Below are positions 20,960-37,291 of a DNA stretch of 64,000 bases, in pieces. The position numbers were made by a program, and so were the translations under genes. The DNA lies in contig NIVC01001849.1 of assembly GCA_002269645.1 (NCBI GenBank), positions 62,001-126,000 of the forward strand, given 5' to 3'. The notes under the pieces are model-generated. The model did not search any database. It was not told the DNA's origin and saw only the letters and a list, made by a program, of their open reading frames with translations. Position 1 is the stretch's first letter. The number at the start of each line of letters is the position of its first letter. This DNA is from Macrostomum lignano. Its lineage: Eukaryota.

Positions 20960-21650
20960 GTCAGCGGGAAAGCACTCAGGCAGCAGGGAGCACTCAGTCA
21001 GCAGGAAAGCATTCATGCAGCAGGGAGCACTCAGGCAGCAGGGAGCACTCAGGCAGCAGGGAGCACTCAGGCAGCAGGGAGCACTCAGTCAGCAGGGAGC
21101 ACTCAGGCAGCAGGGAGCACTCAGTCAGCAGGGAGCACTCAGGCAGCAGGGAGCACTCAGGCAGCAGGGAGCACTCAGTCAGCAGGAAAGCATTCATGCA
21201 GCAGGAAAGCATTCATGCAGCAGGGAGCACTCAGGCAGCAGGGAGCACTCAGGCAGCAGGGAGCACTCAGGCAGCAGGGAGCACTCAGGCAGCAGGGAGC
21301 ACTCAGGCAGCAGGGAGCACTCAGGCAGCAGGAAAGCATTCATGCAGCAGGAAAGCATTCATGCAGCAGGGAGCACTCAGGCAGCAGGGAGCACTCAGGC
21401 AGCAGGGAGCACTCAGTCAGCAGGAAAGCATTCATGCAGCAGGAAAGCATTCATGCAGCAGGGAGCACTCAGGCAGCAGGGAGCACTCAGTCAGCAGGAA
21501 AGCATTCATGCAGCAGGGAGCACTCAGGCAGCAGGGAGCACTCAGGCAGCAGGGAGCACTCAGGCAGTAGGGAAGCACCCAGGCAGCAGGGAGCACTCAG
21601 GCAGTAGGGAAGCACTCAGGCAGCAGCAGGGAAGCACTCAGGCAGCAGGG
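20960..21650. repeat. 18-bp minisatellite (GCAGCAGGGAGCACTCAG)n with gcagcaggaaagcattcat variant
   Basis: Direct. Its edge overlaps the pLGIC stop codon. Confidence 0.9.
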
Positions 21651-21957
21651 TCTCGCACAGAGGCGCAGTGACAGCCAGGACAGCCCAGTAGGCGGCGCTG
21701 AAGGCCACCCAGGCCAGCGGCAGGGCGGCTCTCAGCAGGCGGCGGCACAGCCGGCAGCAGCGAACTTGACGACGTCGACGATGATGCCGGCCGCTGCCTC
21801 GACCATGTCCGGCAGCTCGGCCGACCGACGCATCGATACCCGCCGTGCTGAACAGATCGAGATGATCCGACGAGTCTGACAGCACGAGGGCGGCCGCCGC
21901 GGCGGATGTCGACCGCGGCGCCTTCGAGTAGGCCGTGATGGGCGAGCGGTAGGCCGC
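21616..21957 (-). CDS. pLGIC-like gene exon 7 (intracellular loop end, M4 RAALPLAWVAFSAAYWAVL, stop)
   Basis: catcggcAG acceptor, phase 0. M4-like helix resembling the FPxxF...YW pattern. TGA at 21618-21616. Confidence 0.7.
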   Translation of the reverse strand, partial: AAYRSPITAYSKAPRSTSAAAAALVLSDSSDHLDLFSTAGIDASVGRAAGHGRGSGRHHRRRRQVRCCRLCRRLLRAALPLAWVAFSAAYWAVLAVTAPLCETLLPECFPAAA

Positions 21958-21974
21958 CTGCCGATGGGGTGGAG

Positions 21975-22120
21975 ATCGGGGATGGTTTCAGGGATAGGAT
22001 CAGGGACGGGATCAGGGACGGGATCAGGGATGGGATCAGGGACGGGATCAGGGACGGGATCAGGGAGGGGATCAGGGATGGGATCGGGGATGAGATCAGG
22101 GAGGGGATCAGGGAGGGGAT
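21975..22120. repeat. 12-bp repeat (GGGATCAGGGAC)n in pLGIC intron 6
   Basis: Direct. Confidence 0.85.
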
Positions 22121-22405
22121 TAAGCATGGGCGAGCTCAAAGGATGGGGCAATTAAAGGTAGAGGTAATCAAAGGATGTGATCTCAAAGGACTACGGGTAT
22201 CATAGTATGAGGATTAAAATTACGGGGATAAAAAAGGATGGGAATAAAAACATAGGCAAGGATAGGGTTGAGATCATAATACGGTATGAATGTCTGCGCC
22301 AATCAGCTACTGTGAGTAGCTAGACAGTAGCGTCCTAACTTTGCTACTATTGATATTATACTTGGAAAAACGCAGGCAAGGCCGCACAGCAAACCGAACT
22401 CTCAC

Positions 22406-22672
22406 CTTGCCGGCGCCGGCGCCATTTTTGTTCGCGTCGGAGCCGTCGACGTGTCGCTCACCATCGTCATCGCGGTCTTCCTCGTTGCCACCGTCGTCGC
22501 GAGCATCGCTGCGGCTGCAGAAGCAGCAACAGCAGCAGCAACTGTCGGTGGAGGCGGAGCCGGGCGAGGCGACGGAGTCGGCAGCGGCGCTCAGAAGGCA
22601 GCAGACGGCGACGATGCAGGCGACGGCGTGCCAGGCATCCAGAATGGATAGCGGCTGTGGGAGCTGCCACGC
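22406..22672 (-). CDS. pLGIC-like gene exon 6 (M2-M3 loop LP..ILDAW, M3, Cys-run, loop)
   Basis: cccgcccAG acceptor and AAG|GTGAGA donor. 267 nt, phase 0-0. Confidence 0.7.
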
Positions 22673-22764
22673 CTGGGCGGGGGGTGAATTTTGAGTAGAA
22701 TTCTCTTGGTACTCTACTGTGAGACTGCCTCTGGGGATTCTTTGAGAGTTTATCGTGCTTAATG

Positions 22765-23238
22765 AGATTCTGTGAGATCCTGTGAGAAGCTGTGAGATTT
22801 TGTGGCATTCTGTGAGTTTCAATTAGATTTTGTGAGAATCTCAGAGATTCTGTGAGGTTCTGTGAGAATCTGTGAGATTCTGTGAGATTCTATGAGATTC
22901 TGTGAGATTCTATGAGATTCTGTGAGATTCTGTGAGATTCTGTGAGATTCTGTGAGATTCTATGAGATTCTGTGAGATTCTATGAGATTCTGTGAGATTC
23001 TATGAGATTCTGTGAGATTCTATGAGATTCTGTGAGATTCTATGAGATTCTGTGAGATTCTATGAGAATCTGTGAGATTCTATGAGAATCTGTGAGATTC
23101 TGTGAGAATCTGTGAGATTCTGTGAGAATCTGTGAGATTCTGTGAGAATCTGTGAGATTCTGTGAGAATCTGTGAGATTCTGTGAGAATCTGTGAGATTC
23201 TGTGAGAATCTGTGAGATTCTATGAGATTCTGTGAGAC
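22765..23238. repeat. 10-bp repeat (TGTGAGATTC)n in pLGIC intron 5
   Basis: Direct. Confidence 0.9.
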
Positions 23239-34460: not shown

Positions 34461-35263
34461 ACCTTATTCTCATTAAGCTTCATTATCCTTAAGCCTCATT
34501 ATCTTTGATTCTCATTTCCCTTACGCACTATTATTCTTAATAAGGCTTAAGGGAAGCCTCATTATCTTTAAGCAAGCAACCGACTTTATTAACAAAATTA
34601 GTATTATACAAGAAATGATTACTCGCACCCCAAGTTTTGTATTCCCACAAAGCCGAACAAAAAGCAGAACTATTACAAGTCTAAAACAGCACATCTGAAT
34701 CTCTAAAACAGTTCATTCCACATTAAAATTCATAGAATTTGTAAGCACAAATTTTTCAGCCAACAATTTCCTGCATTTATGAATACAGGTTTCGCTACAT
34801 GCAGGCGAGCTGGTGCGGAAACTGGGCCAACACTGCGGCCCTTATAGTTTCTGGAGAGTAATAGACTTCGGTCAGTCATTTCCTGGCCTTCCCAGCACTT
34901 TTCCCGTTTGTCCCAGTTGTCCAGACTCTCTTCATGCCTGTCTGTCTGTGCCTCTGCCACCCTCAGCTGGCCCTGGGAAGTAGTTTGGGCCGAGTCAAAC
35001 GACAGTCGTTGATTAGGCCCCCGCCCGCTAATAAGTGTTTCAGAGAATTGAAGCCACTTGTGCAGCTCCAGCATAAGGTTGTGTAAGTGTGTGTGTAAAT
35101 AGCTTGTCCGTGTGCCAGCTGCATGGGTACAGGAAGACAAGCAGATTTTGTTTTGTATCGATCTTTTTCTCTAGCTCTCTCAGGTAGAATTGGTAAGCTT
35201 TTCTGCCGATTTTCTATAGTACCAAGCAGGTCTAGAATTTGCTCTTTCTGCCCCCCAGCCAGC

Positions 35264-35376
35264 CTCTCTCTCTCTCTCTCTCTCTCTCTCTCTCTCTCTC
35301 TCTCTCTCTCTCTCTCTCTCTCTCTCTCTCTCTCTCTCTCTCTTTCTCTCTCTCTCTCTCTCTCTCTCTCTCTCTC
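35264..35376. repeat. (CT)n microsatellite
   Basis: Direct. Confidence 0.95.
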
Positions 35377-36069
35377 TGTGATCCTGCTTTCATCCTAACT
35401 ACAGGTAAATCACAGTTTAATCCCACTTTCATCCCGATATCTGTGTAATCTCCATTCTTATCCCTATTCTCGGATCCCTTTTTTATCCCAATCCCACTCG
35501 GATCATATTTTTATCCCAATCCTTCTTGGATCCCATTTTTATCCCAATATTTTACAGATCCCATTTTTATCCAAATCACCGTTTTGGTATCTAATCTACC
35601 CAGAAAGCTAGCAAGATTGCGCACGCCATCTGTTCCAAATTTACACAAATAATTTTAAAGCAGCAATGCACATTTAATGCAGGAGACTATCAGTATATCA
35701 TCATATAGCCTCGAAGAGCCTCCCAAAACTAGGGTAAACGAATTTTAGAAAGCAAATTGAAAAAAAATTTCCAGGTGTGCCGTGCCGCCCGCACCTGCTG
35801 AGCGACCCTGACAGCCCGTCTGCCGCCCATCAGAGCATCAGATGCTCCTGAATCTGAACTACCCGATTCCGAAACTCTCAGAAAATCCCCAACAGCCATT
35901 CGCGCTTTATGAAGCCTCGAACTCCCCCCCCCCCTCTAAAGATCCCAGATTTCCAACAGGTGCTGTCCGTCAGGGCGCCAGCCCACCCGCCGTTAACGCA
36001 CTCAAGGACGCCACGGAGTTTGAGGTTAAGTATCTGGACTGGAAACCGATAAGCCAGATTTTTATACCT

Positions 36070-36605
36070 ATCACTGCCGGATCCCATTATAATCCCTATC
36101 ACTGTCTGATCCCATTATAATCCCAATCACTGCCGGATCCCATTATAATCCCTATCACTGCCGGATCCCATTATAATTCCAATCACTGTCTGATCCCATT
36201 ATAATCCCAATCACTGTCTGATCCCATTAAAATCCCAATCACTGTCTGATCCCATTATAATCCCTATCACTGCCGGATCCCATTATAATTCCAATCACTG
36301 TCTGATCCCATTATAATCCCAATCACTGTCTGATCCCATTAAAATCCCAATCACTGTCTGATCCCATTATAATCCCAATCACCGTCTGATCCCATTATAA
36401 TCCCAATCACCGTCTGATCCCATTATAATCCCAATCACCGTCTGATCCCATTATAATCCCAATCACTGTCTGATCCCATTATAATCCCTATCACCGTCTG
36501 ATCCCATTATAATCCCAATCACTGTCTGATCCCATTATAATCCCAATCACTGTCTGATCCCATTATAATCCCAATCATTGTCTGATAAAATTATAATCCC
36601 TATCA
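36070..36605. repeat. 28-bp minisatellite (TCACTGTCTGATCCCATTATAATCCCAA)n
   Basis: Direct, about 19 units. Confidence 0.9.
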
Positions 36606-36954
36606 CTGTGTAGCATCATCACATCAAAGCTAGCCTCCTAGTTTTCACGATCCAGAAGTTCCATTCAGAAGTCCATGACGTCAACTGCCCCCCTCCTGTT
36701 CAGTAGGCCCCGCCGCCGCAGTCTCTTGTGACTCAGCGCCCGCGTCAGTTCACCAAGGTCAGTTCAGGTAGCAATTATTGGGGTTAATTGCTGTTCCACC
36801 CTAGCGGCAATGTAGAATAAGATGCTGCCATTAATTTATGATGCAGCCAGCGGCATAGCAACACAAGATACCTGCCAGTCAATTTTCATTTATGGAATTC
36901 TATTGCAATTTGGCTATGACACTCTGACTTCCTAATCTGATCCTTACTTATTCT

Positions 36955-37125
36955 TCTTGTCTGATCTTCCTGACTCCTTGTCTGATCCCCTGACTCCTTG
37001 TCTGATCCCCTGACTCCTTGTCTGATCTTCCTGACTCCTTGTCTGATCTTCCTGACTCCTTGTCTGATCCCCTGACTCCTTGTCTGATCCCCTGACTCCT
37101 TGTCTGATCTCCTGACTCCTTGTCT
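36955..37125. repeat. 20-21-bp repeat (CTGACTCCTTGTCTGATCCC)n
   Basis: Direct. Confidence 0.85.
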
Positions 37126-37202
37126 TAAAATCCCCGGTTTCCTACTACAATCCTAAGAGCCCACCCCGAACACAGATGAACTCCGGTCATTCATAAACGC
37201 AC

Positions 37203-37291
37203 CTGCCAAAATCCGGCTGAGCGTTGGCTTCTCTAGCGGAGTGCAGCAGGAGCAGCAATAAAAGCAGAAACTGCATCAGCGGCGGCGACAT
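37203..37291 (-). CDS. pLGIC-like gene exon 1, signal peptide MSPPLMQFLLLLLLLHSAREANAQPDFG
   Basis: ATG at 37291, hydrophobic h-region, ANA-Q cleavage-like site. AG|GTGCGT donor in phase 2 matches exon 2. Confidence 0.7.

Follow-up and report, generated by a model that had tools for sequence, protein, structure and literature searches.

A stretch of 64,000 nucleotides from the free-living flatworm Macrostomum lignano (contig NIVC01001849.1, positions 62,001 to 126,000; in the following the window, whose own numbering is used throughout) carries on its minus strand, at 37291-21616, what we regard with good confidence as an intact gene encoding a Cys-loop receptor subunit in which the Cys-loop is canonical. 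A preliminary description of this locus had announced a highly divergent pentameric ligand-gated ion channel (pLGIC) without a canonical Cys-loop. The first part of this claim stands, given that the Pfam model Neur_chan_LBD is narrowly passed and that profile searches match pLGIC structures, whereas the second part does not: the Cys-loop is encoded by a short exon that had been overlooked. The protein is a divergent orphan Cys-loop receptor and not a Cys-less one.

The gene consists of eight exons and not of seven, as had been stated. The first base of its ATG is at 37291 and the last base of its stop codon at 21616, which are exactly the limits proposed before. The exons add up to 1485 nt, i.e. 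494 codons plus stop, and the reading frame is open throughout; all acceptors are AG, all donors are GT save that of exon 2 (GC), and the phases are compatible. The exons are listed below, a slash marking a splice border.

Exon 1, 37203..37291, minus strand: ATG and signal peptide MSPPLMQFLLLLLLLLHSAREANA, predicted to be cleaved before QPDFG; donor CAG/GTGCG, phase 2.
Exon 2, 33707..33875, minus strand: alpha1 helix (STESVKEQIRSLYMNMDVPE), the conserved glycosylation sequon NVS, and beta1; GC-type donor CAG/GCGAGT.
Exon 3, 33134..33342, minus strand: beta2 to beta6 with LRWRHRF and loop A (LWTPRMAFVN); end ...VIYRL plus TG/GTGAGT, phase 2.
Exon 4, 32200..32282, minus strand: 83 nt encoding (W)YRASVRCDSSSIRHPLGDQLCALVFED, situated between exon 3 with its loop A and the exon formerly taken for loop 7.
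Exon 5, 31976..32107, minus strand: (T)HPQSRRSIRVSPSDRHRLKCSEVRGGQHPLVYRVTEAAGSAEQ, comprising the last part of loop B, beta8, loop F, beta9, and a short, aromatic-free loop C.
Exon 6, 23380..23573, minus strand: beta10 and pre-M1 (RGLRLQAQVCIRS), M1 (LRRCILAGLLTLLCLSSLFLLI, no proline), PAARV, and M2 (RVCVNLLALHCIVQ).
Exon 7, 22406..22672, minus strand: M2-M3 linker (AWQLPQP), M3 (LSILDAWHAVACIVAVCCLLSAAA), and the start of a low-complexity intracellular loop with poly-Cys.
Exon 8, 21616..21957, minus strand: remainder of the intracellular loop (with the conserved SDHLDLF), M4 (LPLAWVAFSAAYWAVLAVTA), C-terminal LLPEC, and stop; acceptor uncertain.

This model is supported by a small set of relatives. 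The first three exons match a single protein, A0A1I8JEP1 (P0001, 147 aa, M. lignano), with 50-56% identity. A HMMER search with a profile combining the N-terminal window sequence and P0001 covered 1.84 billion representative proteins exhaustively and yielded only five proteins at E <= 0.001; all of them are M. lignano gene models. The cluster of P0004 provides a full-length paralogue, A0A1I8FW04 (P0006, 538 aa), which is 38% identical to the predicted protein. P0003 and P0005 are models of a P0001-type paralogue, which have the same N-terminus and run on into exon 4/5-like sequence. The paralogous group comprises at least three loci, and relatives were found in M. lignano only; UniProt already labels the paralogues 'Neur_chan_LBD domain-containing protein'. 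P0006 has kept the signal peptide, alpha1, loop A, M1-M2 (PAARV), M3, and M4, a similarity well beyond what chance would give (tblastn E = 1e-21 with exon 3, 1.6e-6 with exon 4). The individual tblastn matches of P0006 are as follows.

33856-33710, minus strand: alpha1-beta1, E = 1.9e-10.
33339-33133, minus strand: beta2-beta6, E = 1.4e-21.
32281-32192, minus strand: Cys-loop, E = 1.6e-6.
32132-31986, minus strand: segment after the Cys-loop, E = 0.004.
22651-22580, minus strand: M3, E = 0.72; not significant alone, yet the right motif in the right order.
21882-21634, minus strand: end of the intracellular loop and M4, E = 3.4e-8.

Exon 2 shows 59% identity with both P0006 (tblastn E = 1.9e-10) and P0001 (1e-13); a second in-frame acceptor lies 21 nt downstream (after GGACAG), the use of which would make the product seven residues shorter and give the length of the paralogues. 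Exon 3 also contains the match to profile positions 40-100 of Neur_chan_LBD. Exon 5 is kept in P0006 (QRSVHMSLGQHHQHNCS...HAIVYRLSK) and in P0003/P0005, M3 of exon 7 aligns with ISALDIWMAKCTLAIFCCLAVAMA of P0006, and exon 8 corresponds to P0006 residues 452-530. Taken together, exons 2-6, M3 of exon 7, and exon 8 follow P0006 in the same order. Short motifs beyond the core (NVS, SDHLDLF, LLPEC) are kept in the paralogue as well. The paralogue alignment fixes the junctions 2/3, 3/4, 4/5, 5/6, and 6/7, and no segment is missing at any of these. At the first of them, NQ/IL (33707/33342), the alignment with both P0006 and P0001 is gap-free; the motif NQIL quoted in the preliminary description is real, but it exists only across this junction. 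The other quoted strings are present and coding on the minus strand (LWTPRMAFVN at 33243-33214, RRSIRVSPSDRHRLKC at 32093-32046, AARV at 23427-23416). The acceptor of exon 7 is backed by the alignment; its donor is uncertain and was picked by GT and phase alone, the exon 7/8 junction falling inside the unconserved intracellular loop. For the signal peptide, the hydrophobic stretch of exon 1 has a value of 1.64 on the Kyte-Doolittle scale, and the cleavage site was placed by eye. The M3-M4 loop of the predicted protein is long and of low complexity. It contains a run of six cysteines (TGC/TGT repeats, 22531-22548, exon 7) and an Arg-rich stretch (RHHRRRRQVRCCRLCRR, 21760-21790, exon 8); neither is conserved in the paralogue, and both look like microsatellite-derived coding sequence.

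The Cys-loop assignment depends on exon 4. The exon encodes WYRASVRCDSSSIRHPLGDQLCALVFED, which displays the spacing C-x13-C with a proline at +8; the loop proper, CDSSSIRHPLGDQLC, occupies 32263-32219, with C163 at 32263-32261, P171 at 32239-32237, and C177 at 32221-32219. Exon 4 aligns without gaps both with CDMDLAKYPMDEQEC of the GABA-A delta subunit, in the profile search of the PDB described below, and with CDGPALQYPLSDTLC of P0006, to whose Cys-loop exon (HRATVRCDGPALQYPLSDTLCSIVFEE) it is 50% identical. C163 and C177 coincide with the cysteines that delimit the Cys-loop in GABA-A delta and in an alpha7/AChBP chimera, and P171, which like its counterpart in GABA-A delta follows the first Cys by eight residues, corresponds to the invariant beta6-beta7 loop proline. 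The splice borders are canonical and lie in the only phases that fit: the acceptor CTGCAG/G contributes the G that joins the TG left by the exon 3 donor to give Trp, the donor GATA/GTAAGC leaves phase 1, and the exon 5 acceptor CCGCAG/CT takes phase 1. Exon 4 is also contained in the public gene model A0A1I8HIK5. The first three exons alone (156 aa) reach 24.2 bits with Neur_chan_LBD (PF02931), which is under the gathering cut-off of 26, and adding exon 4 lifts the score to 31.3 bits (E = 1.8e-7; residues 82-183 on profile positions 41-146). The Cys-loop is canonical in spacing and proline; its disulfide is a predicted one.

According to the seven-exon model, the stretch RRSIRVSPSDRHRLKC constitutes loop 7, with a leucine at the position of the second Cys. 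This stretch is indeed present and coding and includes P-x-D, and Cys-less pLGICs are known from invertebrates, platyhelminths among them (PMC4795631). However, if exon 3 is joined straight to the exon of the alleged loop 7, the frame shifts and a stop is reached at codon 198, so that the seven-exon join cannot yield the RRSIRVSPSD frame. Exon 4 with its C-x13-C sits between the two with fitting splice phases, the paralogues and A0A1I8HIK5 carry the same Cys-loop exon, and the Pfam score rises only upon adding it. Moreover, the alleged loop 7 belongs to exon 5 and aligns past the Cys-loop, namely with the following stretch of GABA-A delta (beta8/loop F). In our judgement, the seven-exon model has almost no chance of being correct. 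The leucine at the second Cys position and the choice between C-x15-C and no first Cys are artefacts of the mis-assigned exon, the true loop being C163-x13-C177. The reported absence of loop F and beta9 has the same origin, as exon 5 holds beta8, loop F, and beta9. Extra exons restoring C-x13-C had been named in the preliminary description as an argument against its own model; genomic exon 4 is an exon of this kind.

A variant of the splicing pattern, in which the GTGAGT within RVSPSD serves as a donor and is combined with a 29-nt micro-exon (C-SSTESPLDS), was rejected because it needs exon 4 to be skipped; the conservation of the RVSPSD stretch as protein in the paralogues also speaks against it.

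For the family assignment, a profile was composed of the predicted protein, P0006, and P0001 and searched against all PDB sequences. It matched GABA-A delta with E = 2.5e-8, the match running in a single piece from beta1 to M3, so that M1-M3 are aligned within it, plus a weak second stretch on M4; the next matches were GlyR alpha2/alpha3, GABA rho1, beta2, and GluCl. The window sequence alone gave 14 matches at E <= 1, which are weak (E = 0.014-0.03); the 13 top-ranking ones are ectodomains of pLGICs or of AChBP. A two-sequence profile covering pre-M1 to M3 gave 23 PDB matches at E <= 10, all of them to GlyR, GluCl, pHCl, or a GLIC-GlyR chimera. The domain order is signal peptide, alpha1, beta-sandwich ligand-binding domain, Cys-loop, and four hydrophobic segments M1-M4 with a long M3-M4 loop; in the hydropathy plot, the peaks of M1, M3, and M4 are clear and M2 merges with M1. 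The motifs suggest the anion type: M2 has PAARV at its cytoplasmic end, the M2-M3 linker contains LP, M3 opens with [IA]LD[AI]W, and M4 includes YW (AAYW). The start of M3 reads ILDAWHA in the predicted protein, ALDIWMA in the paralogue, and AIDIWMA in GlyR alpha2; the PAR motif, which marks M2 positions -2' to 0' of the anion-selective branch together with the lack of Glu at -1', reads E-C-P-A-A-R-V in the predicted protein, with an extra Ala, and D-R-S-T-R in P0006, without the proline.

Several observations weigh against this assignment. Of the two Pfam models proposed for checking in the preliminary description, only Neur_chan_LBD is found; Neur_chan_memb (PF02932) gave no match at E <= 10 with the full protein, with P0006, or with the minus-strand frames of the exon 6-8 region. 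The transmembrane half used as a single sequence gave no pLGIC match in the PDB, and the matches of the transmembrane-only profile are all in the M1-M3 register, the best having E = 0.034 and none being individually significant. An AlphaFold2 model of P0006, computed from a 7-sequence alignment, has a pLDDT (predicted local distance difference test) value of 30.9 and provides no structural confirmation; this low-confidence model contains four helices at matching places. When the ligand-binding domain was searched as a single sequence, alpha7/AChBP chimeras were slightly ahead of GABA-A delta, which is why the placement in the anionic branch rests mainly on the transmembrane motifs and on the profile search. 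An exact look-up of the 494-aa and 487-aa products in the protein collection found neither. To these points the changes at conserved positions have to be added, which are listed below.

Two further searches were negative. A query from the Cys-loop to M3 found no homologue in the protein collection, and Pfam gave no pLGIC match with exons 4-7 of the preliminary description or with the three minus-strand frames of 33160-31940 and of 23630-20950. The exons without a match were first taken as possibly spurious; the paralogue alignment indicates that they are real and too divergent for the Pfam models.

How derived the protein is can be judged from the table in which Jaiteh et al. list the seven pLGIC positions of highest conservation (PMC4795631 Table 1). 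According to this table, the loop Pro is conserved in 100%, Phe plus Tyr before it in 96%, the Asp at Pro+2 in 93%, the M1 proline in 77%, and the M2-M3 loop proline in 88%. At the seven positions we found:

Loop Pro: present.
M2-M3 Pro: present (QLPQP).
Basic pre-M1 residue: present as R240 in CIRS, with Lys in CIKS of the paralogue; the equivalence is uncertain in the alignment of the hidden Markov model (HMM).
Aromatic before the loop Pro: His in the predicted protein, Tyr in P0006.
Asp of FPxD: at Pro+3, not Pro+2, in the predicted protein (HPLGD) and in P0006 (YPLSD).
Beta9 aromatic: the aligned residue is His.
M1 proline: absent in the predicted protein and in P0006.

The last four lines are the changes referred to above, and such a loss of superfamily-conserved residues could mean that the protein has no channel function. 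In addition, the distance from M2 0' (R279) to the linker proline is 18 residues compared with 23 in GABA-A delta, i.e. about five fewer, and there are seven fewer up to the LD of M3; a His in the middle of M2 is common to the predicted protein and P0006. In loop A, LWTPR has an Arg where WxPD has the Asp, the paralogues having Gln or Arg at this position. No aromatics align with loops B and C of GABA-A delta in this part of the alignment, which is weak (FEDTHP compared with ESYGY of delta; loop C is TEAAGSAEQAR); within this alignment, the earlier remark that these aromatics are missing holds. The LWTPR of loop A may resemble the vertebrate zinc-activated channel; there is no such chain among the PDB matches. 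As the unusual traits are common to the predicted protein and P0006 at an identity of only 38%, they have to be regarded as family characters and not as recent damage.

The same comparison bears on a rival explanation, namely that the gene is a decaying or non-functional paralogue, either an unprocessed pseudogene or a gene being lost whose frame is still open. Residues that couple binding to gating are altered (HPLGD, no M1 proline, shorter M2 region), the 8.4 kb of intron 5 are full of a 20-bp minisatellite and an antisense long interspersed nuclear element (LINE), and minisatellites have grown from the exon 3 donor and from the last codons. The poly-Cys and poly-Arg runs of the intracellular loop point in the same direction, as does the fact that no matching transcript-derived protein was found in the protein collection. 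Against decay stand 494 codons in eight exons without a stop or frameshift and with consensus splice sites, and the motifs NVS, SDHLDLF, and LLPEC, which are kept too. The absence of the M1 proline, the Asp at Pro+3, the short M2, and the mid-M2 His are shared with P0006, which argues for old traits kept under constraint. We consider decay improbable, though the likeliest of the rivals. That the product is a short secreted protein that stops behind exon 3 and is comparable to a fragment of AChBP is hardly credible: P0001 does end with ...AVVYKVW exactly at the end of exon 3, and reading through the donor puts a TGA right behind the TGG in the window, but this TGA is part of the consensus donor TG/GTGAGT, a product of 156 aa breaks off in the middle of the beta-sandwich ahead of the Cys-loop and thus could not adopt an AChBP fold, the exons further on are conserved and follow in frame and in the right order, and the P0001-type models P0003 and P0005 continue into exon 4/5-like sequence.

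Taking the gene as an intact Cys-loop receptor subunit gene, the subunit would most likely form part of a pentamer in which the binding of a ligand between the extracellular domains opens a chloride conductance. Its transmembrane part appears, judged by the motifs, to resemble the anion-selective branch (GABA-A, glycine, GluCl, pHCl). Because the classical agonist pocket is not conserved and the coupling interface is altered, the ligand is probably not GABA, glycine, or glutamate, and the subunit may need partners or may be gated unconventionally. The preliminary description had suggested an accessory or non-neurotransmitter-gated subunit, which is compatible with the lost aromatics of loops B and C and the lost aspartate of WxPD. 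That the product is a functional subunit of a chloride channel and responds to a non-classical ligand has, in our view, a chance that falls slightly short of even. A more specific proposal, which we put forward tentatively and regard as rather doubtful, is that of a lineage-restricted orphan clade of the anionic type, which would have kept the Cys-loop and rebuilt the agonist pocket as well as the coupling and pore elements (no aromatic box, a basic residue for the WxPD Asp, shifted FPxD Asp, no M1 proline, M2 region about five residues shorter, conserved mid-M2 His). Members of such a clade would be gated non-classically, for instance by protons, metal ions, a peptide, or an environmental ligand, or would act as non-conducting modulators.

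The gene is embedded in repetitive DNA. Tandem repeats with a TRF (Tandem Repeats Finder) score >= 150 make up about 25% of the 64-kb window, in more than 30 arrays with periods of 2 to 98 bp, and many long open reading frames (ORFs) of the six-frame list are translated tandem arrays. About one third of the gene span is minisatellite, with a retrotransposon of the non-LTR (long terminal repeat) type on top. The elements in and around the gene are the following.

26269..31654, plus strand: non-LTR retrotransposon in intron 5, antisense to the gene and not part of its product.
23624-26268 and 31655-31942: 20-bp minisatellite of intron 5 (CTGAAGCCTCACTAACTGTA, more than 140 copies), split by the retrotransposon.
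32837-33155, minus strand: 35-bp minisatellite of 9 copies, beginning within exon 3.
20957-21650: 18-bp minisatellite of about 37 copies, extending over the last codons and the stop.
33992-34464: 16-bp array (CTGAAGCCTCACAGCC) in intron 1.
41286-43638, minus strand: upstream neighbour gene.
50000-56000: AT-rich block with a GC content of 0.22-0.32, compared with 0.43-0.59 across most other parts of the window.

The retrotransposon contains ORFs of 307, 537, and 669 aa; its Pfam matches (Exo_endo_phos_2, 1.6e-22; RVT_1, 8.2e-31; RNase_H, 4.3e-13) correspond to an APE endonuclease, a reverse transcriptase, and an RNase H domain, and its 3' tail is (TAAG)n. The 35-bp unit is composed of the last 18 nt of exon 3 (the codons of V-I-Y-R-L-W), the GTGAGT donor, and 11 nt of the intron; as the unit includes the donor, intron 3 opens with nine tandem copies of one splice donor. 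On the coding strand, the unit of the 18-bp array is CCCTGCTGCCTGAGTGCT, which encodes the conserved LLPEC; this seems to be a second array grown out of genic sequence. The 16-bp array of intron 1 and the 20-bp array of intron 5 have the 12-nt core CTGAAGCCTCAC in common, which suggests that they belong to a family of related minisatellites.

An inspection of the public annotation showed that the model A0A1I8HIK5 (P0002, 883 aa) is a fusion, in which the upstream gene runs on into an incomplete version of the receptor gene: its residues 1-170 (100% identity) and 143-641 (96% identity) map to 43638-41286, i.e. the upstream gene is the source of the first 641 residues, and receptor exons 1-5 follow. 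The model is named 'ZP domain-containing protein'; Pfam found no ZP domain at E <= 0.01, neither in the long ORF nor in the whole model. The eight-exon structure presented here replaces this fused and truncated annotation by a corrected full-length gene model. The locus also illustrates how the finding of exons by eye can be misled in a repeat-rich genome. In M. lignano, RNA interference and transgenesis are established. The subunits could serve to probe which share of the conserved coupling interface (FPxD Asp, M1 proline, M2 length) is dispensable for a working Cys-loop receptor.

A Cys-less metazoan pLGIC, even if it had been real, is already documented in platyhelminths (PMC4795631); what emerges instead is a small group of strongly derived Cys-loop subunits that is specific to Macrostomum. 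A survey of flatworm ligand-gated ion channels from 2019 covered M. lignano; it collected PF02932-matching proteins and required the motif F/YPxD (PMC6881066). Under the selection described there, the family, with no PF02932 match and with [HY]PLxD, would probably have been filtered out, and surveys combining PF02932 with F/YPxD probably miss the group in general.

Among the known systems, the anion-selective Cys-loop receptors (GABA-A, GlyR, GluCl, pHCl) are the most similar ones. The predicted protein has in common with them the domain order, the C-x13-C loop with Pro at +8, the best profile matches in the PDB, P-A-(A)-R-V ahead of M2, an M2-M3 linker with L-P, an M3 that opens with A[IL]D[IV]W, and an M4 with YW. 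It differs from them in the motif [HY]PLxD of its family, where the Asp comes one position later than in [FY]PxD, in the replacement of the WxPD Asp by Arg or Gln, in loops B and C without aligned aromatics, in the absence of the M1 proline, in the extra Ala within PAR, and in the shorter M2 region; the lack of a Neur_chan_memb match and the occurrence of relatives in M. lignano only set it further apart. The Cys-less pLGICs comprise ELIC, GLIC, and a metazoan clade, which has been described including platyhelminth members (Jaiteh et al. 2016, PMC4795631). With these, the predicted protein shares the superfamily and the conserved loop proline. Unlike them, it possesses both loop cysteines at canonical spacing, and its transmembrane motifs resemble those of the metazoan anionic Cys-loop receptors.

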